64,000 bases of DNA, from the NCBI GenBank assembly GCA_002269645.1, contig NIVC01002722.1:82535-146534 (forward strand), written 5' to 3'. Positions 23,543 through 59,900 of this stretch are shown here, piece by piece. The position numbers were made by a program, and so were the translations under genes. The notes under the pieces are model-generated. The model searched no databases. It saw only the letters and a list, made by a program, of their open reading frames with translations, and had not been told where the DNA came from. Position 1 is the first letter of the stretch. Every line of letters begins with the position of its first letter. This stretch comes from Macrostomum lignano. Its lineage: Eukaryota.

Positions 23543-23946
23543 TTACTGCCTTTGGGGCAGAAATTTTCCGAACGCCTCTAGCTCACAGATGGTCAGATAT
23601 CCCAGGCTACTTTTCACCATGATCTCCTGTCCAACACCCTCGCATGGTAGCGCCTTGGAGCTGAACTCTTCGCCATTGCTATACCGACTGCACTCGCTTT
23701 TCTCGTCAATATAGATGGCAAAGTTGGTTAATCCGGATCGTCGATTGAGTCGGTTGTAAATTTTGACCATCATGAATTGCACCTGATAATCGGTGGCCGC
23801 CCTCCACCAGCCGGCTCTTGCACTGTCCACAAAAGCGCAGGTCTGCAGGTGAGTAGACGGATCTTCCAGGCGGTCATCAATAGCTTTTTCGCACGTGTGG
23901 GTGTAGTATGATGAGCTCTGTTTGCAGCGCGTCAGAGGCAGCTTGT
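23543..23946 (-). CDS. F-type lectin-like domain exon 1 (terminal exon with stop)
   Basis: Phase-1 acceptor (CTCAG|AC AAG CTG); CAFVDSARAGWW...KIYNRLNRRSGL...LTICELEAFG; TAA at 23545-23543; AATAAA about 35 nt downstream. Confidence 0.75.
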
Positions 23947-24091
23947 CTGAGGGTTCCCGAATTAAAAATTCCTTTTAAATTATAAGCATAAAAGCATCAA
24001 TTGCATTCCTGAGTTGAATTTTCGGACACTTCTCAATATTATTACTTGTAGAAAACAGCTTATCACATAGAATTATTACAATTTCCGTGAT

Positions 24092-24454
24092 TTTTTTTAG
24101 AGGCAGGGGGGGGCTGTGTGCACCCTGGCGCACTTTAAGCGACATAGGCACACAACCGGCGAGAGGCATTGCTGCCCATTCCGCCGACTCCCCTGAGCAG
24201 GGCATACAAGCGCGCGGATACGTACGCAGGCACACACTCACACAGGAGTGTACAGCGGCCCTAACTTTATATTATCGTTAGGCATGTACACTTCACTGTG
24301 CCTTCGGGGTTGGCTCTCAAGGCTGTAAATTGCACGAGCAGAGCCAAGCCGAGATTCCAATTCAGCCCCAAATTAATGTGACTGCACTTGGAATCGAGCC
24401 TGGGTCGCTGGCACACCAGAGCCTGCGCTAGACCGCTGGGCTACGGCCCTCCTT
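24092..24454 (-). mobile_element. tRNA-derived SINE with A-tail and 12-bp TSD
   Basis: Minus-strand head GGGCCGTAGCCCAGCGG...GGCTCGATTCC; A8 tail; TSD AATTTCCGTGAT at 24080-24091 and 24455-24466. Confidence 0.8.
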
Positions 24455-24544: not shown

Positions 24545-24943
24545 CCTCGGCAGGCAAAGACTCTCCGTAGGCTTCAAACTCGCAGAGTGTCAAGTATGGA
24601 ATATTGCTTTTCACCATGATCTCCTGTCCGTATCCATCGCATCTCAGAGTTTTCGACAAAAAGTATTCCGAATCTGTGTACCGATTGCACACTTTCTTCT
24701 CGTCAATGATCACTTCTAAGTTTGTCCGTCTAGACTGACGTTCCTTTGTCAATCGGTTGTAGATTTTGACGTAGATAAACCGTACGGGCTTTTCAGTTTG
24801 AGCCCTCCACCAGGAGTTGTCTGCATTGGTCAGCGCGCAGTGGTCCAGCGTGTCGCCTAATTTATTATCGTAAGCTCTATCGCAGAGAGAAGTCGAACTG
24901 AACTTATCCGAGCCCTGGCTGCAGTTGGTCAGCTTGAGCTTCT
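24545..24943 (-). CDS. F-type lectin-like domain exon 2 (phase 1-1, 399 nt)
   Basis: CAG acceptor (alternative NAGNAG start at 24946); donor G|GTAAG; CSQG...CALT...SWW...IYNR...TLCEFEAYG. Confidence 0.8.
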
Positions 24944-25182
24944 CTGCTGAATGGTTTTTGTTGGAGTGGAGTAGATTTTATTGAAGACGAACGGATATTT
25001 CTATCAGTTATTAAGAATACCCTATGACTCATAATAGTAAAACTGTACTTATACATTTGAGTTTCTAAATAATATTAAATAATTGCTTCCACATGCTAAC
25101 ACATGAGTTTTGTCCAAATAGGAAGTTAAAGGTGTAATCGATTATAATAATTCCTTGTGCTCTTAATCAATATCGTACTCAC

Positions 25183-25587
25183 TTTCCATCGGAAGAGTTT
25201 CTCCAAACGCCTCAATCTCGCAGATCGCCAGCTGCTTGGGCAGGTGACTTCTCACCATGATCTCCTGTCCGGATGCGTCGCATCGTAGAGTCTTGGAGGC
25301 GAATTGTGTCGAATCTTTGTACCGATTGCACACGTTCGTTTCGTCTATTACAACTTCGAAGTCGGTCAGTGTGTCTCGATTCGTGAGCCGATTGTAGATT
25401 TTGATGTACATGAAGCGCACAGGATGCTCAGTTTTCGCCTTCCACCAGGTGTTGTCAATATTGGTGATGGCGCAGTTCTGAATGGGATTATCTGGATCGT
25501 CTAGCTTATCATCGTAAGCTTTGTCGCAAGAGTGCTTGATGCCGTCTAAGCTCGAGCCTTGGCTACAGTTGACCAACTTGAGTTTTT
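25183..25587 (-). CDS. F-type lectin-like domain exon 3 (phase 1-1, 405 nt)
   Basis: GACAG|AA AAA CTC; donor A|GTGAGT; CAIT...TWW...IYNR...LAICEIEAFG. Confidence 0.8.
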
Positions 25588-26006
25588 CTGTCAAGATAAA
25601 AAAGGAATAAGTAAACTGTTTGCTTTATTACAAGGTTTAGGTTTTTTGTTTGTGATTTTATAGTCATCCAAGTGCATTTTTGTCGCGATTTTTCAGTTAA
25701 AGGCAGAACGGGCAGATGTAGGCGAGCTTTGATTGGTAACCTAGCCATCAAATCATTCTATGATTGCATTGAACCTTTCAATTTAAAAAGACATGAGAGT
25801 TTTGTCGCTCTTGTTTGCATCATAGACTAATAAAAAACCTTAGCTGTCTCGAGAAATTGTACATGTACCAATAAAAAAACTATGCAATAGAACACAATTC
25901 AAAATTATTCGCACCGTAGAAGGGTGTAATGCTCTGCGTTTGAAGAGGACATTACGCTTGTACATTTCAATTTCTTTGCTAGTATACCTGAGTTGCAAGG
26001 GAGCAC

Positions 26007-28094
<2,088 letters not shown>

Positions 28095-28230: not shown

Positions 28231-28632
28231 CATGACGTATTGATTTTTGTCCGTAAGCCTCGAACTCGCAGATCGTCAGCTGAGGCATGTGACTTCTCAC
28301 CATGATCTCATGTCCGTATCCGTCGCATCGCAGAGTCTTGGAGGCGAATTGTGTCGAATTTTTGTACCGGTTGCACACGTTCCTCTCGTCTATTACAACT
28401 TCGAAGTCGGTCAGTGTGTCTCGATGCGTGAGCCGATTGTAGATTTTGACGTACACGAACCGCACGGGATATTCAGTCTTCGCCTTCCACCAGGTGTTGT
28501 CAATATTGGTGATGGCGCAGTTCTGAATGGGGTTATCTGGATCGTCCAGCTTATCATCGTAAGCCTTATCGCACAAGTTTTCCGTGCTGTTCAAGTTCGA
28601 GCCCTGTCTGCAGCCGATAAGCTGGATTTTAT
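28231..28632 (-). CDS. F-type lectin-like domain exon 4 (phase 1-1, 402 nt)
   Basis: GCCAG|AT AAA ATC; donor G|GTGAGG; close paralogue of exon 3 (DDPDNPIQNCAITNIDNTWW). Confidence 0.8.
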
Positions 28633-28978
28633 CTGGCAATTTGTGAGAAGTATATTATTCATGTACTTTACATTCAGTTCATCTTGTACTTTTGCTTGTC
28701 TGTGACCTCAATTAATTCAGATAGAATAAGTGATGTGATCAATGAGTACAAACTAATTCTGAAAACGGATGCCTACAGTGTAAAAGGTTTGGCTTAAGAT
28801 GTCGATTAAAGATGCCGAGCTCCCACACCCCTAACTAGTCAGCGCCCCTTTGTACTGACTCAATCGATGGCAATCCAGAAATCGCGCCCCGATAAAAATC
28901 TGGATTTACAATTGCAGATTGATAGCTTTGCTACACTAAAAAACATTAATACGAGCCATTTTGATGGCAATAGGAATA

Positions 28979-29685
28979 TACCTTTTTACGTTCTATTTGA
29001 TAAAAACTGCAACCAATTTGGCCACGGCTCAGCCTGACCATAGACATAGAATTTTCCATAGACAGCCACCGCTAGCGGCAACCAATTTGGTAAAAACTGC
29101 GAGCTATTTTGCCAGCTTGAAGATAGCAGCTGCTCTGATGGCGAATCGTGGGCCGTACCAAAAGATAAGTCAGCTGGATCGAGAGCGAATCGTGAGAGCG
29201 TACAGGAGTGGCGACGACTGGGGAGAGCTTGGCAGAATGATGGGGATGAAGAAACCGACAGTGAGGAACATCGTGACCACGTATGAACGAACTGGTAGAG
29301 TTGGCACTCTGCCAAAAGGAGGAGTGAAGAGGATGGCGCTGACGGAGGCTATGGTGGACACCATTGTTCAATTCGTCGAAGGTCAACCTACTGCCTCTCA
29401 CGCCTCTCAAGTGCCTGCGCTGGATCAACCATTCCCAGACGTACTTCAATCGGTGCTTGAATGCTGAGGACATAATGTTCTGACTTCGTGCATGTATTGT
29501 TAACATTCTTTATCGTTATTGTTATGCTATTGAGCTGCTATCTTCAAGCTGGCAAAATAGCTCGCAGTTTTTACCAAATTGGTTGCCGCTAGCGGTGGCT
29601 GTCTATGGAAAATTGCTGCGGCTGCGTCAGGCTGAGCCGTGGCCAAATTGGTTGCAGTTTTTATCAAATAGAACGTAAAAAGGTA
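28979..29685 (+). mobile_element. Internally deleted Tc1/mariner (IS630-like) element that retains the HTH coding region
   Basis: About 150-bp TIRs (TACCTTTTTACG...), TA TSDs, and an ORF from 29138 (MANRGPYQKISQLDRERIVRAYRSG...TVRNIVTTYERTGRVGTLPKGG) of Tc1 N-terminal type. Confidence 0.8.
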
Positions 29686-29690
29686 TAATA

Positions 29691-30451
29691 TAGCTTTTGG
29701 CAGCCTATTTGGGCTTACGCGCATTTAATTTAATCCAAGATACGCTTGCCAATGTAATGGAGCTTTTTTGTCTATGGTAGCAAGGCTGCCGCAGCGGCAT
29801 TCAATTTGGTCCAACAAGCATCAATTTGGTCCAAATGCTCGTGAGCCAGTGGCAAACTCTTGCCTTCTCGCAACCGCCTAAGGGTTGTTGCGCACCGCTG
29901 GAATGTCAGCGTCTGTACCAGCAGTTTCCAGTCGCTTTTCCAGAGCTCTGCTGATAGTCCAAATCTGATAACCAACTGGAACTGTTCCTTCAACTGCTGC
30001 TGCATTTTCTGCAACGTCAACAAAGGGTTCGTCTCAATTGCATTAAGTAGCAGTTGGACCTGAGTCTCTAGCAACTTGCCGAGGCGATTGCCACCTTTCC
30101 ACAGGCGACCTATGCCAGAAGTGGTTTCAACACGCTGATGGATGCTGTAAACCATTTTTCTTCTATATTCAGCAGCCTTGCAATGTCCTTTGGGTGTTCA
30201 CCTCTGTTGAGTGCTTTGATCACAAGCCAGTGGCATACGTTCGACAACCTAGCATGGTTCACAATTCTGGGGCTGGTGTTGCTCCTCCGCAACAGTTGAA
30301 AATAAAGCTATGGACCAAATTGATGCTTGTTGGACCAAATTAAGTGGCGCTGTGGCAGTCTTTCTACCATAGACAAAAGCTCTGTTGCATTGGCAAACGT
30401 ATCTTGGATTAAATTAAATGCGCGTAAGCCCAAATAGGCTGCCAAAAGCTA
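29691..30451 (-). mobile_element. Second Tc1/mariner-derived MITE family, copy 1
   Basis: Long TIRs TAGCTTTTGGCAGCC / GGCTGCCAAAAGCTA, TA flanks, frameshifted HTH remnant (ALNRGEHPKDIARLLNIEEK...). Confidence 0.75.
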
Positions 30452-30568
30452 TAATTAATTAGTCAGACCACCGATAACACAACTATGGCAAAAAGCGATT
30501 AAAAAGCATGTACAAGTTGCGTTGTCACACAGTTGTCGTCTTTCAGCAGAGTATCATATGCTACTCAC

Positions 30569-30973
30569 CCTCAGTAGGTACCGTTTCCCCGTAAGCCTCG
30601 AACTCGCAGATCGTCAGCTTCGGCAGGCGACTTTTCACCATGATCTCCTGGCCATATCCGTCGCATCGCATGGTTTTATAGGCAAAGAAAAATATACTCT
30701 GGTACCGATTGCACACGTTCTTCTCGTCAATGATCACATCGAAGTTGGTCAGTCTATACCTCCGAGTCGCGCGGTTGTAGATTACAACGTACTTAAACCG
30801 CACGGGATGCTCGGTTTTCGCTTTCCACCAGGTGTTTTCTTTGCCCGTGTGAGCGCAGTTTATAACAGAACCCGGCTCACTTGTATCCAGCTTATCATCG
30901 TAAGCCTTGTTGCACAAGTGATTTGTGCCATCCCAGTTCGAGCCCTGGCTGCAGTTGACGAACTTTAACTTTT
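30569..30973 (-). CDS. F-type lectin-like domain exon 5 (phase 1-1, 405 nt)
   Basis: TTTCAG|AA AAG TTA; donor G|GTGAGT; CAHT...TWW...IYNRATRRYRL...LTICEFEAYG. Confidence 0.85.
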
Positions 30974-31209: not shown

Positions 31210-31614
31210 CGTCTGTAGGCACGGTCAGTCCATAAGCCTCGAACTCACAGACGGTCAGCTGTCCAGCAGCGGTGCTTATCTTGAGTTCCTGTCCGTATCC
31301 ATCGCATCGCAGAATTTTAGAAGCAAATCTATCCGTAGGTTTGTATCGAGTGCACACTTTTTTCCCGTCGATAAGAACCTCAAAGTCAGTCTGCTTGTTT
31401 TTAAAGTCGAGCCGGTCGTAAAGTTTGACGTACGTGAACCGCACAGGGTGCTCAGTTCGCGCCCACCAATAGGTATTCGAATGGTTGCGACTGGTGATTG
31501 CGCAGTGGTCTCCCAATTCTTTTCCATATTCTAACCGATTATCGATAGCTTTATCGCAGGTAGTACTATTATCCCGATCTGTATTCTGTTCGCAGCTGAC
31601 AAGCTTCAGTTTTT
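31210..31614 (-). CDS. F-type lectin-like domain exon 6 (phase 1-1, 405 nt)
   Basis: AACAG|AA AAA CTG; donor G|GTGAGT; CAIT...YWW...LYDR...LTVCEFEAYG. Confidence 0.8.
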
Positions 31615-33501: not shown

Positions 33502-33900
33502 TCTCCGAAGGTACAGTCTCTCCGTAAGCCTCGAACTCGCAGATCGTCAAATTGGGCCGGTTACTTCTCACCATGATCTTCTGACCGTACGCGTCGCATT
33601 TTAGAATCTTTGAAGCAAATACCTTCGATTTTTTGTACCGATTGCACACTGTCTTATCGTCGATGATCACTTCGAAGTCGGTCAGCCCTTCTCGTTGTTT
33701 GAGCTGGTTGTAGATTTTGACATAGTTGAACCGCACGGGTTGCTGAGTTTTTGCCATCCACCAAGTTTTGCGATCGCCGGTTCGTGCACAGTTCAATAGA
33801 GAGCCATCTTCATTTGTCTTACCGTCGTAGGCCTTATAACACATGTTCTTTCCGCCAGGCAAGCTTGAGCCCTGGCGACAGCCATGAAGCTTCAGTTTTT
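33502..33900 (-). CDS. F-type lectin-like domain exon 7 (phase 1-1, 399 nt)
   Basis: GCCAG|AA AAA CTG; donor A|GTGAGT; CART...TWW...IYNQ...LTICEFEAYG. Confidence 0.8.
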
Positions 33901-36635: not shown

Positions 36636-37004
36636 GCAGCACTTTTCCGTAAGCCTCGAACTCGCAGATCGCCAGCTTGGGCAGGTGACTCCTCACCATG
36701 ATCTCATGTCCGTATCCGCCGCAAGGCAGTATTTTTGTATCGAATTCTGTCGAATCTTTGTACCGATTGCAAACGTTCTCGTCGATTAGAACTTCAAAGT
36801 TGGTCAGACTGTCCCGTTGTTTAGCACGGCTGAAGATTTTGACGAACATGAACCACACAGGTTGTGAAGTTTGTGCCTTCCACCAGGTGTTGTCACTATT
36901 GGTGATTGCACACTGGGCTAGAGAACTATCGTAAGCCTCATGGCACAGGTGTTTAGCGTCATCAGCGTTCGAGCCCTGACTGCAGCCATCAAATTTGAGC
37001 TTAG
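36636..37004 (-). CDS. F-type lectin-like domain exon 8 (phase 1-1, 369 nt)
   Basis: ACCAG|CT AAG CTC; donor C|GTAAGT; shortened N-terminal loop; CAIT...TWW...IFSR...LAICEFEAYG. Confidence 0.8.
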
Positions 37005-37151
37005 CTGGTGAAATGGTTGAAAGGATGGTGGGTTCAAAAATTTCCAACTGAAAAACTTTTATCAAAACGTTTTGCGGGTTATTAAATCAAAATCAACACA
37101 AAATATTCCAAAACACAGACTGAACAGTAAATTGCAAAAATATATGAAAAA

Positions 37152-37900: not shown

Positions 37901-38102
37901 TTTTTGTTTCTGTCTATCGCACTGCATCAATCTCTGCCGGTTCTCTCTGTATTTATTCGCTTGTCCATTAATCTAGTTTGTGATTCATTCAAGGACCACT
38001 GTAAATAACAATGTATACTTTATATAACATTATAAAATTATATACAGTGGTCCTTGGGTTCATTCATGTAGTGAATACCCTTAAACACGGTGTATATAGC
38101 AA

Positions 38103-39102: not shown

Positions 39103-39498
39103 GCAGTGCTTTTCCGTAAGCCTCGAACTCGCAGATTGTCAGCTGAGGCAGGCGACTTTTCACCATGATCTCCTGGCCGTATCCGTCGCATCGCAGAATC
39201 TTAGTGGCAAATCGACTCCAACTTTTGTTGTACCGATTGCACACGTTCTTATCGTCGATAATCACGTCGAAGTTGGTGAGTCTCTCCTTCAGAATCTCGC
39301 GGTTGTAGATTTTGACGCAAATGAACCGCACAGGAAACTCGGTTTTCGCCTTCCACCAGGTGTTTTCTTTTCCCGTGTGAGCGCAGTTTAATAGACCCAA
39401 TTTACCTGTATCCAGTTTGCCATCATAAGCCTTGTCGCACAAGTAATTTGTTTCATCCTGGTTCGAGCCTTGGCTGCAGCTGACGAGTTTGAGTTTTG
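39103..39498 (-). CDS. F-type lectin-like domain exon 9 (phase 1-1, 396 nt)
   Basis: CGCAG|CA AAA CTC; donor C|GTGAGT; CAHT...IYNREILKERL. Confidence 0.85.
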
Positions 39499-39642
39499 CT
39501 GCGTTGAATGGAGAGTGGCAGTTGAAATTTCAGATGCACACAGAAACACAAATATGTTTTGGAATCTGTTTCCAACTAACCAATAAAATAACTCTTGCAA
39601 GAGTATGCGTGTCTATATGCAAAACAGAATGTGCACTGCTTG

Positions 39643-40198
<556 letters not shown>

Positions 40199-40609: not shown

Positions 40610-41002
40610 GCATTGGTTCTCCGAAAGCCTCGAACTCGCAGATTGTCAGCTTTGGCAGGTAACTTTTCACCATGATCTCATGTCCGTATCCTTCGCATCG
40701 CAGAACCTTGGTGGCGAATAGTTTTGGATTTTTGTACCGATTGCACACGTTCTTATCGTCGATGATCACTTCGAAGTCGGTCAGTCTCTCCCTCAGAATG
40801 TCGCGGTTGTAGATTTTGACGTACACGAAGTGCATGGGATTATCAGTCTTCGCCTTCCACCAGGTGTTTTGGTTGTCCGTGTGAGCGCAGTTTAATATAC
40901 CTAATGTACCTCTATCCAGTTTGCCATCATAAGCCTTGAAGCACACGTGCTTCAAGTTATCCCAGTACGAGCCTTGGCTGCAGGTGACGAACTCGAATTT
41001 TT
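40610..41002 (-). CDS. F-type lectin-like domain exon 10 (phase 1-1, 393 nt)
   Basis: TGCAG|AA AAA TTC; donor C|GTGAGT; CAHT...IYNRDILRERL. Confidence 0.85.
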
Positions 41003-47915: not shown

Positions 47916-48519
47916 AGATTATTACTCATAGGCCAAAACTAGCAATTTAAGCCCCCCGTTGGGGGACGCAATAATGACGCCAAATGGTTTTTATTTGCTA
48001 TGGCTCCTAAGCATCAGCTTAAGAATTGAAGTTTAGTCTATGCCCATAGACGTATTGAGCTCTCACTGCAAGAAAAATACACTAATTAGATAGGGAGAAT
48101 ATCTTAAATTCTTAAATTCTTAAGCTGATGCTTAGGAGCATCGCATGGGTCTATTCTTTAATATATTAGCAATATTTTCATTTTCCTTTTTGCACTCCCC
48201 GAATTATCGTGACTGCCATAGACAAAGTATTTTTCGTCTCCTTTTCCTTTTTCGCTCCCCTCTGAAAGGAATTTCCCAGAATAGTACGAGCTCGCATCAA
48301 AATATGCTTTTAGCCAATAGGAAGGAACGGGGAGGAAAGGGATGTTAAAAGCGAAAATCGAGCGAGACAAAAATAACTGGCTCAGATTAGCACTCCATTC
48401 TATTCTTTCCTCCATGGATCTACCTCATATATATTTTCTCGCCCTGTCTCAAAGCATGAGGCCTTAGGCTGGGGCCATAGATATACACACGGTATGTCTT
48501 TATCTACACCAGTTCTAAC

Positions 48520-48587
48520 CACAGATACTATATACGTGAATATATTACTATATTACTATATACTATATAAGTTATATAGTATCCGTG
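48520..48587. mobile_element. 68-bp P-like micro-MITE
   Basis: TIR CAC(A/G)GATACTATATA; flanks GTTCTAAC / GTTCTAAA. Confidence 0.65.
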
Positions 48588-48689
48588 GTTCTAAACGTAG
48601 GTCTACGCTACACGTTCACATAGGGCGAAATTAACGCCCACCACACTCACTGAGGCAGTATTGCTTTTGCCAGCCTAACTGAGAATAAA

Positions 48690-49015
48690 GCCATCCAAAG
48701 TGAGAATCCTGCCTACGCTGACTGCGAAGGGCCTGGCTGCGTGCAGCCTTAGTCTATGGGCCATAGACAATAAAGGACAAGCAAAGTGATAAAAAGCCAT
48801 CCAATGTGAGAATCGATTGGTCTATGCGTCGTATTCTTTTATTTTTTTACCTTCTGAGCTTCTGAGCCATATGACTAGCCAATCCTAGCATATCCTTTAT
48901 AGTCTATGGCTCATAGACTAGGCTGGACGCAGCTAGGCCCTTCGTATTCAGCGTAGGCAGGATTCTCACATTGGATGGCTTTTTATCACTTTTCTTGTCC
49001 TTTATTGTCTATGTC
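48690..49015. mobile_element. Rearranged CATAGAC-ended MITE cluster
   Basis: CATAGACAATAAAGGACAAG...GCCATCCAATGTGAGAATC (48762) with its reverse complement at 48960-49012; 48693-48755 is the inverse of 48912-48975. Confidence 0.55.
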
Positions 49016-49446
49016 TATGGTTAGAATAAACTGCATCATTGTGAGGGAAGCGGCAACGATCAGATCATCAGAAAGGAGACGAACAAACTTCCAGGGACAC
49101 CGGCGATCGCCAAGCCCCATGAGTTCAACGATTTTTGATAATCACAACTGTCTACTACTCACACGGAATTCGTTATTATTTACTTTATAGAACGGCTGTA
49201 AGGCGTGCAACGCGCTATCTGCCCCATACTGTTTACGACACCCCTCACATAAAAACGTACTTATTTTTAACCAAGTCTCGACCAATCAAGCATCATTTCA
49301 CACCCCCACCCCAATGACAAATATATTGAGCAGACAAGGAAAAGCAGCGGCCACCATTTCCCGCGCGCAAACGTAGAATTCGTATGAATACTTTATATTG
49401 TTTACTATATTGGCCATGCTAACAGGTAAAACAAAGTCGCACTCAC

Positions 49447-49839
49447 GCAGCGCTTTTCCGTAAGCCTCGAACTCGCAGATCGCCAGTCGAGGCAGGCGAC
49501 TTTTCACCATGATCTCCTGTCCGATTCCGTCGCATTGCAGAATCTTGGTGGCGAATTGTTTCGAATCTTTGTACCGATTGCACACGTTGTTATCGTCGAT
49601 GATCACTTCGAAGTCGGTCAGTCTCTCCCTCAGAGTCGCGCGGTTGTAGATTTTGACGTACATGAAGCGCACATGCACTTCGGTTTTCGCCTTCCACCAG
49701 GTGTTTTGCTTGTCAGTTTGAGCGCAGTTTAATATACCTGATGTACCTGTATCCAGTTTGCCATCATAAGCCTTGTTGCACAAGTGCTTTGTGCCATCCC
49801 AGTTTGAGCCTTGGCTGCAGCTGACAAACTTGAATTTTT
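49447..49839 (-). CDS. F-type lectin-like domain exon 11 (phase 1-1, 393 nt)
   Basis: TGCAG|AA AAA TTC; donor C|GTGAGT; CAQT...IYNRATLRERL. Confidence 0.85.
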
Positions 49840-50814
49840 CTGCATGGGTTGAGAGTGGCAGTTAAAAGTTAAAAAATTACTTCTGACAACATGCAGTTTT
49901 TCGCACCTTCTAAACATTCGTTACAGTTACGTTCACAATTCGATGAAACAGGATTTTTATGAAATGCCACCTGAGACCGGCAAACAAGCAAATTTTATTT
50001 CAACTTTTTGTTTTCCTGTTTCTTTTGTGAAATATTTTCTAGCAGGATTTTTGTGGGTTTTTTGGTCTTTGTTAAAGCCTAAATTAGTGCTGCTGTTGTG
50101 CCGGCATGTACTTGCACTGTTGAGCGATCTATTCAGCCCTCAGTGAGGGGTGCGGCCGTCATTGCACTTTTCCTCATATGCCCACGACCCGCCGCTTTGT
50201 CTGGCGTCCCTAATCGCTGAATACTACGATGTGTTACGCACCAGCCCTGCGACCGCCCCACCTCCCTTTCTGTGTGATTGGCTGAATTACTGCCCACCGA
50301 CGCTTCCCCGTGCTTCAGTTATGATTCAATTCATTGTGTACGCGCTTGTGCCGACCAATCAGGGGCTGAAAAAAGGAAGTGGGTCCTCATCCCAAACCCC
50401 TAGAGGTTTGAGGAAGGATTTGTTTGTGAAAAATAGAAATACGTATTGGAGTTGAGCAAGGGGAGCGCGCCTTTTGAACTTTTCTCCTCGAAGCAATTTA
50501 CAACGTTTACAACGCTCAGCTATTGCAGGCATTCCGGTCAGTGAACTGAAGCAATCCCCAGGATCGTGGGCTGAAAGAGTCTGTTGGAACTCTAGATCCG
50601 GCCAAGTCACTACACTATGTTGAAATGCTCGATCAAGCACACACATCACCCCCACTTGCACTGTCAACTGACCAAATATATTGAGTAGACAAGGCAAAAC
50701 AGTGGCCACCATTTTCCGCGCGCAAGCGTAGACTTTACATAAATAGTCATAAATATTTGTTACTACATCGACTATTCCTTTTTTCTATAATAGCTAAAAC
50801 AAAGTCGAACTCAC

Positions 50815-51207
50815 GCAAAGGTTTTCCGTAAGCCTCGAACTCGCAGATCGTCAGCTGAGGCAGGTAACTTTTCACCATGATCTCATGTCCGTATCCGTCG
50901 CATTTCAGAGTCTTATAGGCGAATTGTGTCGAATCTTTGTACCGATTGCACACATTCTTATCGTCGATGATCACTTCGAAGTCTGTCAGTCTCTCCCTCA
51001 GCATGTCGCGGTTGTAGATTTTGACGTACATGAAGAGCATGGGATTATCAGTCTTCGCCTTCCACCAGGTGTTTTGTTTGCCCGTGTGAGCGCAGTTTAA
51101 TAGATACCCTATATCTGAATCCAGTTTGCCATCATAAGCCTTGTTGCACATGTAATTTGTGTCATCCTGGTTCGAGCCCTGGCTGCAGCTGACGAATTTG
51201 AATTTTG
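50815..51207 (-). CDS. F-type lectin-like domain exon 12 (phase 1-1, 393 nt)
   Basis: TGCAG|CA AAA TTC; donor C|GTGAGT; CAHT...IYNRDMLRERL. Confidence 0.85.
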
Positions 51208-51446
51208 CTGCATTGAATGGAGAGTGGCAGTTGAAATTTCAGATGTACACCGAAACACAAATATATTTACGGTATGAATAGCTGTTCGACGGACCAATCA
51301 GAAACTTTGTATGGGTGTGTATGTCTACTCGTATATGCTAAAATAGCACGTTTACTGCGAATGGATAGTCACTGCTGCTAGTAAACACTATTAACAAGTT
51401 GAGCGGTTTTTTGGCAGTTAATCTCTAGTAAAACTGCATTTTTCAG

Positions 51447-51983
51447 GGGGGTCTTTCTCGAAAGCAACTTACAATCGACCATAGACGTAAGTTGGGTAAG
51501 CTACACTTACGGGTTGCTCGAAGGGCTCGCAAGTTAGCTATGCGTAAGATTGATCGCAACTTTACGAGTTCGTAACTTTGCGCAAAAGACTGTTTCTCGA
51601 AGCGTTCGTATGTCTATGGTCTTTCGTAAGGTTGATCTTGATTCTTAACCCTACGACAGCTCGGTATCAGTCGTAAGACGCACTTAAGCACTAATCGCAT
51701 AGTACGTGGTGAAGCTTTAGTCAAGCCAAGTCAAGTTAAACTTTATCGAAGGTGAGTCTTTCTCGAAAGCAACTTACGATAGACTAAAGTAAAGATATTT
51801 GCAGATTTATGACCATAGACATGCAACTTTTCGTTTCAGATACGACTTACGAACAGCGTAAGCCACGCAAAGTCTAAGTGAGTTTTGAGAAAGCGTCTTA
51901 CGAGCAAACTTACGCTACACGTAAATTTCTTTCTTACGATCTAACTTACCATAGAACTTACGTGAGTTTCGAGAAACACCCCC
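51447..51983. mobile_element. PIF/Harbinger-like MITE (second copy at about 57769-58305)
   Basis: GGGGGTCTTTCTCGAAA / TTTCGAGAAACACCCCC ends with a 3-bp CAG duplication. Confidence 0.55.
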
Positions 51984-52324
51984 CAGACCGAAATTTTTAT
52001 GAAATGCTACCTAAGACTGGCAAGCAAGCAAAGTTCTTACGAAATTTCTGCCGCTCTAGTCTCCCTGGCTTATTTTTTCTGGAATGATTTTTGTGGAATT
52101 TTCTGGTCATTGTTAAAACCCTAATTTATCGCTATGCAGAAATGCATTATACAGAAATCCATTTAAAAGAAACGACTGTCTTTGTCGGGGGTCGGTGCTG
52201 GTTTGAGGTGGTAGGCCTCACCCACCCACTGTGTTCTAAGGGCTACCTTGTGAACCGCTGGTGCCTATTTCGCTGCGGTTGATTAAATTCTTAATAATAT
52301 ATAATTTATAAAATAATAATATAA

Positions 52325-53340
52325 TGTAACGATATATACAGATTTTTTTCGGCAGCTAATTGCTGCCGTTAAAGAATCTGTCTATGTCGTTATTGTGCTT
52401 TTTTGAATGAAACTGATTATTAACGATAGATTTTATACCTTTCGGTAGTATATTCAGCGATGCAGGATGTTATTACAACTCTGGGACACATGTATTGTTA
52501 TGTCTTCAGGTTACTTAAAGTCTTCAATATACTTAAGGCATTAATTATTAGTGCTGATATCCTAGCAGACGTTTCCGCGGCTCCAAGGTTCTTAGTCTTG
52601 CTCTTATTTCTCTTTATTCCACATTCTCACAGCGGGATTTTAACCCAAGCCTGTTTTGCAGCTTCATTTAGTCCATAGATAAAACAAAACGCGTCAAACT
52701 GCATATGCAATTAAAATAATATCAATATTATAGTCGCGTCATATCATCCCTCTTTCTTCAAGATGATTGGTACCTGTCCAATGCTCTCCGGATCCGCACT
52801 GGGTACCTGGACTCCGAAGGTTGAATTGAACTTGGTTCTTCATCGTCCTGGATAGGCTTGTGGGTTTCAGCCTCGGCTCTGTCTCTGACATGGTTCCGGT
52901 GCACCACCAGATCTCGTCCTCTATGGTCCTGTACTCGTCTCAGCTGTTCTCCAACCGCTTCTTGAAGTACTCCCTCCCTCCACTCCTTGTTGAAGGGATC
53001 TTGGACCCAAACAGGACTGTGAATTTGATCTGTTTTCTTGTGCTGGAACGACCGACGATGTAGCAGTGACAGTCTAGTATTAAACTGGCGCCCAAACATT
53101 TCTCGACACGGAGCGACACCGTTGGCTCTTGGGCAGACTCGAATGGCGTACAAAGTTTGTTGCATTCGAACTTCCGGGTCTGGATCGTTTAGCTGTTTTA
53201 GCTTGGTCTTCAGCCTTTTCACTGCTACCTCGACTACTCCATTCGAAGCGGGAAGGTATCTGGGTGACTTGAGGTGTAGCACTCCCATTCGCTTCAACCA
53301 GGCTTCTGTTGAAGCTTGGAAACAGAAGCATTCAGTGTGA
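52325..53340 (-). mobile_element. Truncated Gypsy LTR retrotransposon: integrase C-terminus, PPT and 3' LTR (duplicated at about 58646-59660)
   Basis: ORF 53297-52758 has SPRYLPASNGVVEVAVKRLK...P...MFGRQFNTRL of integrase type. The stop is followed by AGAAAGAGGGA, then TG...CA (52746-52325). Confidence 0.75.
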
Positions 53341-54489
53341 TGTCATTCTCTTGCAGCCTTTCTTACAGAGGGGGGTTGTGAGGGTTTGACTCTGACTATA
53401 TATGAAAGTGTGTTTGGCAATCAGATCTCACTTCTGTTTTTCCGTCCCCGGTTTTGATTTTTGTCCCGGCTTTCCGGCCGCTTGCCATTGTTTTGGTTCG
53501 CGCTTTGAGGCGCTTGAGTTCATCACCCCCGGTCCATATTTTTGTCCCCTGCCCGACCGCTTCAGTCTTGTAGCGTAACGTATACGGCAGATTCCTGTCT
53601 GAAGTCGTCGCTATCAAGCGCGGTTAGATAGAGACTGTCGGATTTGACCAAGTACGTGGCCTCGACCCAGAGGGCCTCGATCAGTGTCACACTGAAGGGC
53701 AGTGCTGATAGAATTTAGTCAGTGCTCCGTTGAACGGTCAATTCGGCAGGGCTCTCGTTTGAGTGTAGGTTCTGGTTTAGGCCAGGGGTTAGGAGTCTTC
53801 TCCGTTGGTCGTGTTCGGTTTTTCTTCTTCAAGCTGAGATCTGCTTGCCATTGCGTAACTAAGTTATTATTAATCGTTTGTCTCGATATCATTTTCCGCT
53901 ATTATCAGTTCGAAATTATCTGCGCCGCGAATTGCATTGAAGCTTGTAACTTGAAGTAATCAAATTAAATCGTCTAGCCAATTATCAGTCTGTATCATAT
54001 AGGATTATCACTCTCTAAATCTATTCGGTTCGTGTTCATCGGCATTCTTCCTTTTCTTGTACCGTACTGTGACTATTGGAGAAAGACTGGTAGGACTCGC
54101 CGACCGGCGATAGGCGATTAGCTTTAAAATCTCCGAACGCTCCAAGTAGGTTTGTCTAGGGCCTAAATAATTGCTTATCGTGCATGCAATATATATTCAT
54201 ATTGTATTCATCACATCGGCTAAATTTTCCCGGGTTTTTTTTCACAGACTAGAATGTCGTCATTCTTACAGCATACTAAAACATACTACGCACTACACCT
54301 TTTTCCATTCTATTTTGGCAAACATCTAGAACATCAACATCTAGAACATACTACGCGCTAAAGTCTCTGTTTTCGTGCGGCCATTCAGCGGCAAATGGAA
54401 TCCCCGTCCGTCGATCGCTAGGTAAACATCATTAGCGGAGAATCATTCAAGCGTTGTAATGGAGCTCTTGTCGGAACTCATTTGTGACA

Positions 54490-56902
54490 CAAGGACAACT
54501 TAAGTAGTTACGTTATATATAGGACGCGACACTCAGCTTTCGTGGAAATTTTTTTGGAGGCCCGTAAGCCGTATAAAGTTCTACGTACATAAGCCTAGGA
54601 TTCGACCGCTACATAGAGCACAGGACTGTGTGTGTTGTAATAAACCATTCAGGTTTTCATTTCTTACTAAACTTGATAAGCTGACTTCACCTATTAATTA
54701 AAATAATTATATCACGTTCCCTTAATGGCCAATAACAATATGCATTTTTTAATTTGGATTTGTGAAATAGCTACTGGTTTTCTTGTTTTCTTTTTTGCTG
54801 ACAAACATGGTTTCTTTATATCACAATTGTCAACAAGAGACCATGTTTACAAAGCATTTTTTTATAGTTATTATAGCTCTAGGTTGCAAATACCATTGCA
54901 TCTAAAATTAAATTTTGTTTTCTGAAAAATAACATATAGAACATCATATTTGATATGAAAAAATGGTCTAGGAATCTTCCATCATGAAAGCTTGGCTTGT
55001 TTATAGTTGACTGGGTGTGTTCTCCTATTATATTCTAATATAAGTCAAGAAAATAGTGACAATTTTTCCAAAGTCACTTTTTGCCTTTTTGGGTTTCTCA
55101 AATTTTTACACTCTAGAAATTGACATTAAAATGGAAGCTTTTTTTCTATGTATTTCTATGTATTTCTATGTCATGTCTGTTAGGCCCATTGTAGTTGAAA
55201 CTGAAATATTTCTATTAGTAAAAACCTTATTTATGTTAATGACTACCCCTAGTAGTTAGAAAGTTTTAAAGCCATGTTTTTCATTAAATAGCTTGTTTAT
55301 TAACTAACACTAGGAATTAATTTGAAACTTGTAATGTGCTAAATAGTATAAACACTAATAGGCCTACAGCTATTATAAGTAAAACCTATAAGAAATCTTT
55401 GACCAATAACATTTCATTTATATAGGTTATTAAGTGATAAACAAGGTTCATAAACATATAAATGTGCAATTTAAAATACTTTTTTTACTTTATATCATTC
55501 GAGAATGTCACCAAACACATGGGAAAATGTGTAGAAAGCATTGGCCAAAGGATGCAAGGCTTACAAAAATCAAGCGATATTTTCAACCTATTGACCCACC
55601 ATCTGTCTTTATGTGCCCACCTAGCTCACTCTATGCGGCAAACATTTGCAGGTACATTTTTGCCAAAGTTCTTTAAATAATGCTTTCAATATAAGTCAGC
55701 GCTGTCACTCAATTGCATTATTTCAGTGTCATCTAGAAATGTGACTGAACGTTGTATTCTGGCGTCACATTGTCAACAAATGCCTGATGAACTACAGGAC
55801 TTTAATACAAAGGATAGAATTGGAGGCTGGGAGAACTTTGCATCCGCTGTGGTAGACAAGCCAGCCTGGATGTCAAGTTGGTTGGTCCAACGCGAGGAGG
55901 GTTGCTTCGGAAACCCGCGAGCAGCTTGTTGCGATGGTGAGCTGTCGGACGACGAACTTGCACATCTCAATGATCTAGTTTCGACTTCGAAAGACAGCGC
56001 TGAATCCTCCATACCCACTGATGAAGAACAGTTGGCACTGTACTATGTATGCGGATATGTAGCTCGCAAGGAGCAGATCCCAGTTTCAGAAGACAGTGGC
56101 CAAGCTGATTCAAATTCTCCAATTCAGTTGCCCGCTGATTGTGAGTTCACGCGTTTACTATCGAGAGGCAAGCTGCGCAAGCCTCCAGAGTGGCTCCTGG
56201 TTTTTGCCGCACTGTGCTACCGACTGTTCTCATCACTGCGACCGTGTTGCTCAACTCGATTGGCTCGGATGTTTGTGTTTGTTTTTGAATCAGCCATCAC
56301 TTAAATTTTGACTAAACCTGTGGATTTTTGGAACAGTTTTGCTGCTCAGGGCTGCTCAGTTTTAGTGTTGAAAAAAAGCCAAATCTAGGTCAGGATCCAG
56401 ATCCAGGTCCTGGTCCTTCGGGTAAATTTCTGCTTCGTCGCAGATGCTTTGTCGAGTTTGTTTTCCGTTTTGTCTCACTCTAACGCAGGCCACAAATTTA
56501 TTAACTTTTTTGATACTCGTAATAAATAAACCAATGGCATTTGACAGTGATATTTTCTATAATACATAAACTGTTTTATTTTACACTTGCTTAATGAGAT
56601 TATTAGTTTACAAACTAAAAACTCGTTTTCGCTATTGAGTATTGACTAGGAATTGTGACAGACTGACAAATTTCTAAAGAAAATTTGGCGTATTTTACAC
56701 AAAATTGCACGAAATTGGGTTGTTTTCACTGTACTTAACTGTACGCTGCTTATAAATGTAGTCTACTATTTTATCACTGACATTTTAACGAAAAAAAAAT
56801 TTCTGGACCTAACACCGAAAGAATCAGCTTTCTACGTGCAACTAGTCGAAAATTACATGTATGTTAAGACCAGGCCTCCAATAAAAATTACACGATACGC
56901 GA
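54490..56902 (+). mobile_element. Decayed P-element-superfamily (THAP9-like) DNA transposon
   Basis: ORF 55726-56304 has LALYYVCGYVARK and LSRGKLRKP, resembling the P transposase C-terminus. Ends carry imperfect inverted motifs ACACTC.C.T.TCGTG.AA.TTTT.TTGGAGGCC. Both end regions recur inverted at 60395-61432. Confidence 0.65.
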
Positions 56903-56936
56903 GTAGGACGCAACACTCGCGTATCGTGTAATTTTC

Positions 56937-59900
56937 GATCCGGCCAAGTCACGATCAAGCACACACATCACCCCCACTTGCACTGTCAACTGACCAAATA
57001 TATTGAGTAGACAAGGCAAAACAGTGGCCACCATTTTCCGCGCGCAAGCGTAGACTTTACATAAATAGTCATAAATATTTGTTACTACATCGACTATTCC
57101 TTTTTTCTATAATAGCTAAAACAAAGTCGAACTCACGCAAAGGTTTTCCGTAAGCCTCGAACTCGCAGATCGTCAGCTGAGGCAGGTAACTTTTCACCAT
57201 GATCTCATGTCCGTATCCGTCGCATTTCAGAGTCTTATAGGCGAATTGTGTCGAATCTTTGTACCGATTGCACACATTCTTATCGTCGATGATCACTTCG
57301 AAGTCTGTCAGTCTCTCCCTCAGCATGTCGCGGTTGTAGATTTTGACGTACATGAAGAGCATGGGATTATCAGTCTTCGCCTTCCACCAGGTGTTTTGTT
57401 TGCCCGTGTGAGCGCAGTTTAATAGATACCCTATATCTGAATCCAGTTTGCCATCATAAGCCTTGTTGCACATGTAATTTGTGTCATCCTGGTTCGAGCC
57501 CTGGCTGCAGCTGACGAATTTGAATTTTGCTGCATTGAATGGAGAGTGGCAGTTGAAATTTCAGATGTACACCGAAACACAAATATATTTACGGTATGAA
57601 TAGCTGTTCGACGGACCAATCAGAAACTTTGTATGGGTGTGTATGTCTACTCGTATATGCTAAAATAGCACGTTTACTGCGAATGGATAGTCACTGCTGC
57701 TAGTAAACACTATTAACAAGTTGAGCGGTTTTTTGGCAGTTAATCTCTAGTAAAACTGCATTTTTCAGGGGGGTCTTTCTCGAAAGCAACTTACAATCGA
57801 CCATAGACGTAAGTTGGGTAAGCTACACTTACGGGTTGCTCGAAGGGCTCGCAAGTTAGCTATGCGTAAGATTGATCGCAACTTTACGAGTTCGTAACTT
57901 TGCGCAAAAGACTGTTTCTCGAAGCGTTCGTATGTCTATGGTCTTTCGTAAGGTTGATCTTGATTCTTAACCCTACGACAGCTCGGTATCAGTCGTAAGA
58001 CGCACTTAAGCACTAATCGCATAGTACGTGGTGAAGCTTTAGTCAAGCCAAGTCAAGTTAAACTTTATCGAAGGTGAGTCTTTCTCGAAAGCAACTTACG
58101 ATAGACTAAAGTAAAGATATTTGCAGATTTATGACCATAGACATGCAACTTTTCGTTTCAGATACGACTTACGAACAGCGTAAGCCACGCAAAGTCTAAG
58201 TGAGTTTTGAGAAAGCGTCTTACGAGCAAACTTACGCTACACGTAAATTTCTTTCTTACGATCTAACTTACCATAGAACTTACGTGAGTTTCGAGAAACA
58301 CCCCCCAGACCGAAATTTTTATGAAATGCTACCTAAGACTGGCAAGCAAGCAAAGTTCTTACGAAATTTCTGCCGCTCTAGTCTCCCTGGCTTATTTTTT
58401 CTGGAATGATTTTTGTGGAATTTTCTGGTCATTGTTAAAACCCTAATTTATCGCTATGCAGAAATGCATTATACAGAAATCCATTTAAAAGAAACGACTG
58501 TCTTTGTCGGGGTCGGTGCTGGTTTGAGGTGGTAGGCCTCACCCACCCACTGTGTTCTAAGGGCTACCTTGTGAACCGCTGGTGCCTATTTCGCTGCGGT
58601 TGATTAAATTCTTAATAATATATAATTTATAAAATAATAATATAATGTAACGATATATACAGATTTTTTTCGGCAGCTAATTGCTGCCGTTAAAGAATCT
58701 GTCTATGTCGTTATTGTGCTTTTTTGAATGAAACTGATTATTAACGATAGATTTTATACCTTTCGGTAGTATATTCAGCGATGCAGGATGTTATTACAAC
58801 TCTGGGACACATGTATTGTTATGTCTTCAGGTTACTTAAAGTCTTCAATATACTTAAGGCATTAATTATTAGTGCTGATATCCTAGCAGACGTTTCCGCG
58901 GCTCCAAGGTTCTTAGTCTTGCTCTTATTTCTCTTTATTCCACATTCTCACAGCGGGATTTTAACCCAAGCCTGTTTTGCAGCTTCATTTAGTCCATAGA
59001 TAAAACAAAACGCGTCAAACTGCATATGCAATTAAAATAATATCAATATTATAGTCGCGTCATATCATCCCTCTTTCCTTCAAGATGATTGGTACCTGTC
59101 CAATGCTCTCCGGATCCGCACTGGGTACCTGGACTCCGAAGGTTGAATTGAACTTGGTTCTTCATCGTCCTGGATAGGCTTGTGGGTTTCAGCCTCGGCT
59201 CTGTCTCTGACATGGTTCCGGTGCACCACCAGATCTCGTCCTCTATGGTCCTGTACTCGTCTCAGCTGTTCTCCAACCGCTTCTTGAAGTACTCCCTCCC
59301 TCCACTCCTTGTTGAAGGGATCTTGGACCCAAACAGGACTGTGAATTTGATCTGTTTTCTTGTGCTGGAACGACCGACGATGTAGCAGTGACAGTCTAGT
59401 ATTAAACTGGCGCCCAAACATTTCTCGACACGGAGCGACACCGTTGGCTCTTGGGCAGACTCGAATGGCGTACAAAGTTTGTTGCATTCGAACTTCCGGG
59501 TCTGGATCGTTTAGCTGTTTTAGCTTGGTCTTCAGCCTTTTCACTGCTACCTCGACTACTCCATTCGAAGCGGGAAGGTATCTGGGTGACTTGAGGTGTA
59601 GCACTCCCATTCGCTTCAACCAGGCTTCTGTTGAAGCTTGGAAACAGAAGCATTCAGTGTGATGTCATTCTCTTGCAGCCTTTCTTACAGAGGGGGGTTG
59701 TGAGGGTTTGACTCTGACTATATATGAAAGTGTGTTTGGCAATCAGATCTCACTTCTGTTTTTCCGTCCCCGGTTTTGATTTTTGTCCCGGCTTTCCGGC
59801 CGCTTGCCATTGTTTTGGTTCGCGCTTTGAGGCGCTTGAGTTCATCACCCCCGGTCCATATTTTTGTCCCCTGCCCGACGCTTCAGTCTTGTAGCGTAAC

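Follow-up and report, generated by a model that had tools for sequence, protein, structure and literature searches.

F-type lectins that have been characterised contain between one and five F-type lectin domains (FTLDs), whereas database models of Xenopus tropicalis reach 13-14. The fish and amphibian tandem F-type lectins, MsaFBP32/MsFTL1 and the multi-FTLD fucolectins of Xenopus including LOC100491211 of X. tropicalis, are secreted proteins that combine motif-intact and motif-variant domains in one chain, and their repeats are surrounded by phase-1 introns, as in the striped-bass gene (PMC12221842). The tandem FTLD repeats of the sperm bindin of Crassostrea gigas likewise come from one gene; only some of them carry the His-Arg-Arg triad, and microsatellites and retroelement remnants are found in the introns next to them. 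Here alternative splicing sets the repeat number, yielding mRNAs with 1-5 FTLDs (PMC5712786), and this variability was demonstrated in cDNA and protein. Dscam1-type clusters are long tandem series of homologous one-module exons that arose by exon duplication.

How does the array of FTLD exons in the flatworm Macrostomum lignano compare with these systems? The stretch analysed, hereafter the window, comprises the last 64 kb of contig NIVC01002722.1. A preliminary description of it had proposed either a giant multidomain lectin or a Dscam-like splicing system, and the giant lectin is borne out by RNA-seq-guided models at three loci, whereas the Dscam-like alternative is contradicted by the splicing of adjacent cassettes to each other. 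Very probably the array constitutes the 3' thirteen fourteenths of a single gene, the dominant mRNA of which includes all cassettes and encodes a secreted, multivalent soluble lectin of ~1875 aa with 14 tandem FTLDs. The same description stated that known F-type lectins have far fewer tandem domains, which is true of the characterised proteins and not of the Xenopus database models.

Like the fish and amphibian lectins, the flatworm protein is predicted to be secreted and to consist of tandem FTLDs, has phase-1 introns around its repeats and mixes motif-intact with motif-variant domains. The C-terminal domain of FBP32 lacks the Cys-Cys pair and has the shortened R-D-x-x-x-x-R spacing exactly like the domains in the window. 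In contrast, an FTLD is encoded by a pair of exons in MsFTL1 and by one exon in the flatworm, the Cys82-Cys83 disulfide is absent in all 14 flatworm domains, an extra N-terminal Cys pair (C7-C20) is present, and vertebrate FTLDs are only ~20-25% identical in sequence. With oyster bindin the gene shares the single-gene organisation, the restriction of the triad to some of the repeats and the microsatellites and retroelement remnants in the adjoining introns. However, the annotated flatworm transcripts are all-inclusive, each FTLD is a single uninterrupted exon and not split by a recombinogenic intron as in the oyster, and the array retains its structure across three loci, unlike the variable oyster repeats. 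Long tandem homologous one-module exons are common to the flatworm array and to Dscam1, but the former shows no exclusivity, no docking or selector elements and no constitutive exons flanking a cluster, and its cassettes are joined in the mRNA.

Locus and gene models

The gene in the window is BOX15_Mlig029438g1, with Mlig002920g1 and Mlig031901g1 as sister loci. It is interrupted by the contig end: positions 57530..64000 (minus strand) hold the 3' part of the intron between exons 14 and 13, and base 64000, the last of the contig, aligns ~8 bp downstream of the 14th lectin exon in the sister locus. The thirteen exons of the preliminary description are therefore all that the window contains and not all of the gene, as a 14th domain exon and a leader lie just off the contig end. 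A signal-peptide exon had been expected beyond 57529, and the sister locus places the leader there. Its exon map is intact and consists of the leader followed by 14 cassettes, all of phase 1, and the complete gene would thus have 15 coding exons, namely a leader of 24 codons that encodes the signal peptide and has a phase-1 donor, and 14 one-domain exons.

GenBank entry PAA55666.1 already unites the window exons in one protein and matches the spliced exons to 100% over 1569 aa. The full model, PAA57549.1 (1875 aa), stems from the sister locus, which is complete (NIVC01002473.1:99046-139594), matches the window exons to 99.3% and adds the signal peptide and the 14th domain, with all 14 FTLD exons included. 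At the three homeologous loci the GenBank models join the cassettes consecutively, the cassette order is identical, and within the DNA available no copy-number variation of cassettes was seen among them. These models were produced by a STAR/StringTie/TACO RNA-seq-guided assembly (PMC5730564). The all-inclusive isoform thus comes from a published, short-read, genome-guided annotation in which multi-mapping was allowed among three near-identical loci and isoforms below 75% of the major one were dropped (TACO isoform-frac 0.75), for which reason minor exon-skipping isoforms may exist. PAA55666.1 itself begins in exon 13 and yet has 12 domains instead of 13, being one 131-aa cassette short. As the missing cassette is one of two identical exons (12 and 13, see below), its absence may be either an artefact of this identity or a genuine skip.

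Older UniProt models based on the ML2 assembly (P0002, P0003, P0008 and P0011), which suggest skips or chimeras, were rejected as unreliable, since they read through into introns and include exon 2 twice as well as a chimeric 11/9 domain. Among the protein clusters searched, neither Logan nor other transcript-derived proteins of this gene were present. The three gene IDs are absent from the searchable main texts and from the supplements of selected M. lignano papers, and the literature search returned no paper connecting Macrostomum with F-type lectins and no expression or functional data.

Exon anatomy

A tblastn search of the whole window with one domain as query returned exactly 13 copies, all on the minus strand between 23558 and 57470 (E 5e-30 to 1e-75), and no comparable copy elsewhere in the 64 kb, in agreement with the 13 homologous fucolectin-like exons first described. 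Each exon encodes one FTLD. Numbered from the 3' end, exons 13 (57137..57529), 12 (50815..51207), 11 (49447..49839) and 10 (40610..41002) measure 393 nt each, exon 9 (39103..39498) 396 nt, exon 8 (36636..37004), which encodes the shortest domain, 369 nt, exon 7 (33502..33900) 399 nt, exons 6 (31210..31614), 5 (30569..30973) and 3 (25183..25587) 405 nt, and exons 4 (28231..28632) and 2 (24545..24946) 402 nt. These twelve are of phase 1-1 with lengths divisible by 3, all end at a phase-1 GT donor, mostly GTGAGT, and they are followed by the terminal exon 1 (23543..23946). A phase-1 AG acceptor precedes all 13 exons, in the case of exon 2 as a CAGCAG tandem acceptor of which the GenBank model uses the 24946 site, and none of the cassettes begins with Met. 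The exon boundaries thus agree in every respect (phases, the 369-405 nt length range, lack of Met) with those reported previously. Joined end to end, the 13 exons form a single open frame of 1718 codons, close to the ~1700 aa that had been estimated.

The claim that only the most 3' copy has a stop codon and a poly(A) signal also proved correct. Exon 1 alone ends in a stop codon (TAA, 23545-23543), and AATAAA (23504..23509, minus strand) follows 36 nt downstream. Read beyond their donors, the other cassettes reach a stop after 5-146 nt of intron, and after 11 of these 12 read-through stops the poly(A) hexamer is absent; the only other AATAAA, which follows the exon 7 read-through, is no more than expected by chance. 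The introns, all GT-AG, range from 236 to 9542 nt, and no homologue of the leader exon and no signal-peptide-like mini-exon with a phase-1 donor was found in any of them, including the two shortest of 236 bp, just as no leader had been visible between copies lying only about 240 bp apart. That the cassettes belong to one gene and are not separate genes, as had been argued, is seen from PAA55666.1, which joins them, and from the lack of an internal leader. An independent start of every cassette by SL trans-splicing was rejected, the SL ATG being out of frame throughout.

Fold and binding motifs

Sequence and structure searches against the PDB assign the cassettes to the FTLD family with a predicted F-type beta-jellyroll fold. 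A check of each exon by HMM search had been proposed, and the matches to the F5/8-type-C families PF00754 and PF22633 amount to 14-20 bits per cassette, all under the gathering score of ~28, which is why the assignment is based on the PDB sequence and fold searches. By phmmer, FBP32 (5.7e-10), lectinolysin (4e-5), SP2159 (7e-4) and eel agglutinin (8e-3) were retrieved. The AF2 model of domain 12 is all-beta (pLDDT 79.5, pTM 0.78), and the top 10 Foldseek hits in the PDB, among them 2j1r, 1k12, 3le0, 4gwi, 2j22 and also 3cqo, are all F-type lectin domains (TM 0.67-0.75, E ~1e-6). A profile of the 13 domains moreover retrieves named Xenopus fucolectins. The cassettes share six invariant Cys residues.

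In solved FTLDs, a His and two Arg residues contact fucose. The domains were examined for the corresponding fucose-binding motif H-X24-R-X-D-X4-(R/K), which contains this basic triad, and the complete set of His, Arg, acidic residue and Arg is found only in domains 13, 12, 10 and 9, the last as His-Arg-Glu-Arg, about a third of the domains. Domain 5 and the off-window domain 14 keep His/Arg/Arg without the acidic residue. The His is replaced by Gln in domain 11, by Ile in domains 8, 6 (the most divergent internal copy), 4 and 3, by Arg in domain 7, where in addition the first Arg is replaced by Gln, by Leu in domain 2 and by Phe in domain 1. Compared with eel agglutinin, the two Arg residues lie one residue closer together, with the same spacing as in the C-domain of FBP32. 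At the position of the Ca2+-binding motif h2DGx, AYDGK occurs in domains 13-9 and 7 and AYDDK, AYDNK, AIDNR, AIDDR or AYDSS in the others, the Asp being invariant and the Gly variable. Along the protein, the domains form a gradient from motif-intact at the N-terminal to motif-degenerate at the C-terminal end.

Duplication and selection

Exons 12 and 13 are identical owing to a 3.45-kb tandem segmental duplication with 99.86% identity between its copies. The proximal copy (50630..54075, minus strand) carries exon 12 and the upstream intron with a retroelement-like ORF, and the distal copy (56952..60396, minus strand) carries exon 13. The 14 symmetric phase 1-1 modules probably originated by repeated tandem exon duplication, of which exons 12/13 are the newest product.

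Purifying selection acts on all exons. Between the homeologous loci pN/pS is 0.19 with identical coding length and no indels, pairwise dN/dS amounts to 0.17-0.4 among the older paralogous cassettes and to 0.5-0.93 among the young 5' cassettes 9-12, the latter being pairwise and not site-level values, and all 13 cassettes, although 45-76% diverged, have retained open frames, the six Cys and intact splice sites.

Splicing mode and alternative readings

What kind of splicing does such an array undergo? The most serious competitor of an all-inclusive mRNA, albeit an unlikely one, is combinatorial exon skipping in the manner of oyster bindin, by which the same single gene would produce regulated isoforms with differing subsets and numbers of FTLDs and thereby diversify glycan recognition. 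Since all cassettes are of symmetric phase 1-1 and have lengths divisible by 3, any subset would remain in frame; the preliminary description took this symmetry as a pointer to combinatorial use, an argument that does not hold, because phase-1 symmetry is a general trait of FTLD and extracellular modules and the striped-bass repeats are flanked in the same way (PMC12221842). There are precedents in oyster bindin and in Xenopus, where exactly one FTLD of 148 aa distinguishes RefSeq isoform X1 from X3, and the dN/dS of 0.5-0.93 among the young 5' cassettes is a further argument. The GenBank model of the present locus is one cassette short, but this cassette is ambiguous; the older UniProt model P0002 links exon 8 directly and in frame to exon 3, but also contains the chimeric domain and the duplicated exon, suggesting that the older ML2 genome was mis-assembled. 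The isoform threshold of TACO would conceal minor isoforms, yet the dominant annotated transcripts of three loci take in all cassettes consecutively, and near-consensus GTGAGT donors are present at almost all cassettes, as expected of constitutive exons. That the 14 symmetric exons form a full bindin-like system, in which regulated skipping, perhaps specific for tissue, individual or infection, would generate many secreted lectins of differing valency, has a slightly smaller chance still. If true, lectins mixing fucose-competent and motif-altered domains would provide a platyhelminth with a splicing-based glycan-recognition repertoire on a larger scale than oyster bindin, although even then combinatorial FTLD splicing would not be a new principle, having been described for the oyster protein (PMC5712786).

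The other readings are far less probable. Loss of the triad His in seven or eight of 13 domains could be taken to mean that only some cassettes are functional, with those at the C-terminal end that lack the motif being pseudo-exons retained by the annotation, but such decay is very hard to reconcile with the conserved frames, Cys residues and splice sites, the low dN/dS among old copies and the low pN/pS between loci. More improbable still, and scarcely credible, are the two readings that break up the all-inclusive transcript. Under mutually exclusive splicing as in Dscam, an mRNA would contain a single cassette, or one from each cluster, between the leader and the terminal exon. The sole argument for this is the superficial anatomy, in that many homologous exons stand in a long row and are in frame and interchangeable. 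Such splicing is contradicted by the RNA-seq-guided models, which splice neighbouring cassettes together along the whole array, and nothing would enforce exclusivity, since exon lengths in multiples of 3 cause no frameshift or NMD and GT-AG introns of at least 236 nt impose no steric block. A crude search for docking/selector pairs (12-mers with up to 1 mismatch, no G-U pairs, fixed 236-nt flanks) showed the cassette flanks to be no more complementary to the leader or last intron than shuffled sequences are, the best 12-mer covering 1-3 of 13-14 flanks as in the shuffled null. A cluster of separate small lectin genes would need a private leader or promoter, or SL trans-splicing, for each cassette and termination by intron read-through. 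SL trans-splicing affects about 30% of the genes of M. lignano, with an SL that ends in ATG (PMC8629364), every cassette frame does meet a stop soon after its donor, and some older predictions (P0003, P0008) finish in such read-throughs. However, translation from the SL ATG would yield ORFs of just 3-37 aa at any cassette, neither an initial Met nor an intronic leader is available, the poly(A) hexamer is missing after nearly all read-through stops, and the 15-exon model passed undivided through the TBONE pipeline, which splits transcripts at SL sites.

Predicted product and significance

The all-inclusive mRNA would thus be translated into a secreted protein consisting only of FTLDs, with no transmembrane or other domain predicted. 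Domains 14, 13, 12, 10, 9 and also 5 probably bind fucosylated glycans because they retain His/Arg/Arg, and the C-terminal domains 8, 7, 6, 4, 3, 2 and 1, in which the His is lost, are probably spacers or have a shifted specificity. As most domains are without the canonical fucose triad, the designation fucose lectin may fit only part of the protein. Multivalency would allow cross-linking or agglutination of glycan-bearing surfaces, for example of microbes, mucus or egg and sperm coats. M. lignano is genetically tractable, with RNAi, in situ hybridisation and transgenesis as standard methods, and a role in immunity, mucus or reproduction is therefore directly testable.

Although unusually long, the gene is an ordinary member of an established lectin family; it is already annotated and gives no sign of Dscam-like splicing. 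Rather than a splicing-based diversity machine it is a normal multidomain lectin gene that inherited its phase-1 symmetry from duplication of the FTLD module. Its 14 FTLDs match the longest tandem arrays in any public model, and the motif gradient together with the very recent exon duplication would make it a neat case of a gene growing through tandem exon duplication with later subfunctionalisation. Within M. lignano it is part of an expanded and as yet uncharacterised family of CC-less FTLD proteins, whose members, the best non-self profile matches (E 1e-130 to 1e-73), include BOX15_Mlig034341 ('Kringle domain-containing', 6 FTLDs) and WSC-domain and FTP-domain models with 4-6. These paralogues are of the same CC-less subtype but have fewer repeats, mixed with other domain types, whereas the gene described here is FTLD-only and has the longest array among the M. 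lignano models found.

Gene structure

A tblastn search with a single domain as query places 13 homologous segments on the minus strand between positions 23558 and 57470 (E 5e-30 to 1e-75) and reveals no further credible domain copy in the 64-kb window. Exon borders were delimited by extending the open frame of each copy and listing every AG and GT site with its phase, which gave a single consistent solution for the whole set. More precisely, the acceptor AG falls between codon positions 1 and 2 in 13/13 copies and a donor GT of the same phase follows in 12 copies (GTGAGT in 10/12). Numbered in transcript order down to the terminal, 3'-most exon 1, exons 13 to 2 measure 393, 393, 393, 393, 396, 369, 399, 405, 405, 402, 405 and 402 nt, each divisible by 3. 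Exon 1 (404 nt, minus strand) ends with a TAA stop at 23545-23543, and a poly(A) hexamer AATAAA is found 36 nt downstream of this stop. Among the other 12 exons, AATAAA occurs within 120 nt of the intronic read-through stop only for exon 7, about as expected by chance since the hexamer is found once per 1.7 kb. Intron lengths lie between 236 and 8444 bp, and the 13 exons joined form one uninterrupted frame of 1718 codons. The preliminary description of this array was thus accurate, including its coordinates.

Close protein-search matches to the spliced product are exclusively Macrostomum lignano entries: PAA55666.1 (BOX15_Mlig029438g1; 100% identity, 1569 aa), PAA57549.1 (BOX15_Mlig002920g1, 1875 aa; 99.3% identity, 1718 aa) and PAA58779.1 (BOX15_Mlig031901g1, 1084 aa; 99.1% identity). 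The locus of PAA55666.1 is the exact reverse complement of the final 50,458 bases of the window, which therefore forms the 64-kb end of contig NIVC01002722.1 (GCA_002269645.1). PAA57549.1 mapped to its own locus, the intact sister locus L001, reveals a leader exon that encodes MTKLLGSLLVAVALAVYGNERTYA and ends at a phase-1 GTGAGT donor, followed by 14 one-domain exons, all phase 1-1 and arranged as in the window. In the alignment, base 64000 of the window corresponds to L001 position 13019, about 8 bp beyond the donor of the 14th-domain exon, indicating that the contig end cuts the gene and that the leader exon sits off the contig, behind one additional lectin exon. The signal-peptide exon predicted to lie beyond 57529 hence exists, upstream of the 14th lectin exon, and the proposal of one giant multidomain lectin is supported, such a protein already being in GenBank (PAA55666.1, PAA57549.1). 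The gene is annotated there and is an uncharacterised member of a known family. Exons 10 to 1 recur, with their order unchanged, at a third homeologous locus. The presence of the gene at three near-identical loci agrees with the redundancy already described for the M. lignano assembly, whose source line has extra large chromosomes (PMC5730564).

Comparison with L001 shows the 13 exons of the window to be of equal total length (5159 nt) at the two loci, with 16 synonymous and 12 non-synonymous changes separating them (pS 0.015, pN 0.003, ratio 0.19); the introns diverge by 0.1-4.5%, with indels. Pairwise dN/dS is 0.17-0.40 for the older paralogous cassettes and 0.52-0.93 for the young 5' cassettes 9-12 (39103-51207). 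On these pairwise comparisons, cassettes 9-12 could be under relaxed or diversifying selection after duplication, possibly similar to oyster bindin and eel fucolectins, for which such selection is reported. Exons 12 and 13 are identical because both lie inside a tandem segmental duplication (50630-54075 versus 56952-60396; 3.45 kb, 99.86% identity, period 6322 bp). As L001 also has the duplicated exon pair, an assembly artefact is unlikely and the duplication probably genuine. Both copies contain a retroelement-like ORF of 179 aa (52758-53297 and 59080-59619) with no Pfam match.

Domain identity and proposed function

Pfam yields F5/8-type-C matches for the cassettes, all sub-threshold. A sequence search of the PDB leads to F-type lectins, namely striped-bass FBP32 (5.7e-10), lectinolysin, pneumococcal SP2159 and eel agglutinin. 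An AlphaFold model of domain 12 (pLDDT 79.5, pTM 0.78), built with the 13 copies as input alignment, has only F-type lectin domains (FTLDs; TM 0.67-0.75) among its best 10 PDB structure matches, with CBM32 and discoidin domains ranking after them. Six cysteines are invariant in the alignment of the 13 copies, all of which lack the adjacent Cys-Cys pair of eel agglutinin. NRDSFEKRI of the FBP32 C-terminal domain aligns with flatworm NRDMLRERL at equal spacing. The published FTLD motif, H-X24-R-X-D-X4-R/K (PMC5712786), was scored domain by domain. His, Arg, an acidic residue and Arg are all kept in domains 13, 12, 10 and 9; in domain 5, and in domain 14 outside the window, only the three basic residues of the motif remain; His is replaced by Gln in domain 11 and by Ile, Arg, Leu or Phe in domains 8, 7, 6, 4, 3, 2 and 1, most of which have also lost the distal basic residue. 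The binding sites thus form an N-to-C gradient from canonical to degenerate.

What could such a protein do? Apart from a signal peptide it is made solely of 14 FTLDs, and the binding residues that are intact lie mostly in the N-terminal half. Judged from this anatomy, the best-supported mechanism is that of a secreted, highly multivalent lectin that would cross-link fucosylated glycans, with candidate roles in immunity, mucus or surface biology, or reproduction. No published mention of the three gene IDs, or of F-type lectins from Macrostomum, was found, and the supplements to three papers on expression in M. lignano do not contain the IDs either.

Reviews list 1-5 tandem FTLDs per protein, with 2 or 4 in fish, up to 5 in Xenopus and 1-5 in oyster bindin (PMC5712786; PMC12221842). 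When a profile built from the 13 domains was run against 1.84 billion representative proteins, 550 relatives reached E <=1e-3, among them X. tropicalis fucolectin LOC100491211, with models of 1800-2055 aa and 13-14 FTLDs. A snail protein of 2619 aa contains at least 12 stretches matching the profile. Given these arrays of similar size, the flatworm gene stands at the top of the known range and not past it. Other M. lignano paralogues, including the protein models P0012, P0013 and P0015 from further loci, carry 4-6 FTLDs of the Cys-Cys-less subtype together with Kringle or WSC domains, and some of them bear a Kringle- or WSC-domain-containing label in UniProt. Such paralogues point to an expansion of the Cys-Cys-less family specific to this lineage.

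Alternative readings of the array

If the cassettes were separate genes, each would be expressed independently; however, 0/13 begin with Met, no homologue of the leader exon is present in the window, and scanning all introns turned up no ATG-initiated mini-ORF with a hydrophobic core ending at a phase-1 GT(A/G)AG donor. The start codon could also be supplied by trans-splicing, an option missing from the preliminary description, as in M. lignano a 35-nt spliced leader ending in ATG is joined to the transcripts of about 30% of genes (PMC8629364), but ahead of any cassette this ATG is in the wrong frame and opens ORFs of merely 3-37 aa. A Dscam-like system of mutually exclusive splicing, also put forward earlier, is not supported: it is contradicted by annotated junctions between neighbouring cassettes, and nothing in the anatomy would enforce it, with exons divisible by 3 and introns of at least 236 nt, all GT-AG. 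In addition, when the leader intron and the last intron were searched for docking sequences complementary to cassette flanks, coverage was at best 1-3 of 13-14 flanks, as with shuffled controls. Phase-1 symmetry is generally expected in duplicated extracellular modules. The FTLD repeats of the striped-bass gene are likewise flanked by phase-1 introns (PMC12221842; PMC5712786), so that this symmetry is a family trait and not evidence of combinatorial use.

Regulated skipping of cassettes is an unlikely possibility and the sole live version of the more exciting earlier reading. It has a precedent in oyster bindin, where alternative splicing of one FTLD gene determines the number of repeats (PMC5712786), and a single 148-aa domain is the exact difference between RefSeq isoforms X1 and X3 of LOC100491211. 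The gene models in GenBank are not ab initio predictions: STAR mapped the RNA-seq reads, StringTie assembled them, and TACO combined the result with de novo transcripts placed by BLAT; spliced-leader and poly(A) sites mapped by experiment served to split transcripts, and TransDecoder predicted the ORFs (PMC5730564). A 15-exon model joining each neighbouring cassette in such a pipeline implies junction support throughout the array. The pipeline permitted multi-mapping, and a TACO isoform-frac of 0.75 means that near-dominant isoforms alone were retained. The PAA55666.1 coding sequence starts with a Met inside exon 13 (57473) and ends at 23543, yet has 12 domains, not 13, omitting one member of the exon pair 12/13. 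Since these exons are identical, the absent cassette may reflect either mapping ambiguity or a true single-cassette skip.

Intron repeats and neighbouring genes

Very long microsatellites occur in intron 4/3 ((CTGT)x383, 26280-27811) and intron 10/9 ((TCTA)x139, 39643-40199), similar to oyster bindin, in which intronic microsatellites adjoin the FTLD exons; minisatellites of 15-57-nt units flank them at 26003-26244 and 27940-28075. Intron 11/10 (8.4 kb) is filled with minisatellites of 22-nt and 30-nt units (43638-44244, 45117-45422, 46797-47139, 47174-47615), which cause its strong positive GC skew (0.16-0.28) and generate spurious long ORFs on both strands. Introns 5/4 and 9/8 host Tc1/mariner-type transposase HTH remnants (28961-29467, plus strand; 37543-37893, minus strand; HTH_SB 9e-7, HTH_28, HTH_29) and an 80% identical dispersed repeat (29677-30452 versus 37136-37901). 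A 650-bp inverted repeat (97%) in the introns upstream of exon 12 (54489-55138) and exon 13 (61432-60779) is probably a mobile element present twice in opposite orientations. Intron 13/12 contains an annotated 190-aa gene on the opposite strand (55732-56304, plus strand; L001 21997-22569) with no Pfam match. According to the called-gene table of locus L002, the downstream neighbour is a gene for a 1073-aa ankyrin-repeat protein on the strand opposite to the lectin (about 18298-22796, plus strand), followed below about 13686 by a Band_7/flotillin gene. Close to this flotillin-like neighbour, downstream of the lectin gene, lie purine-rich satellites of 53-nt and 24-nt units (9697-10828, 11498-12220; GC about 0.55, GC skew 0.5, AT skew 0.39).
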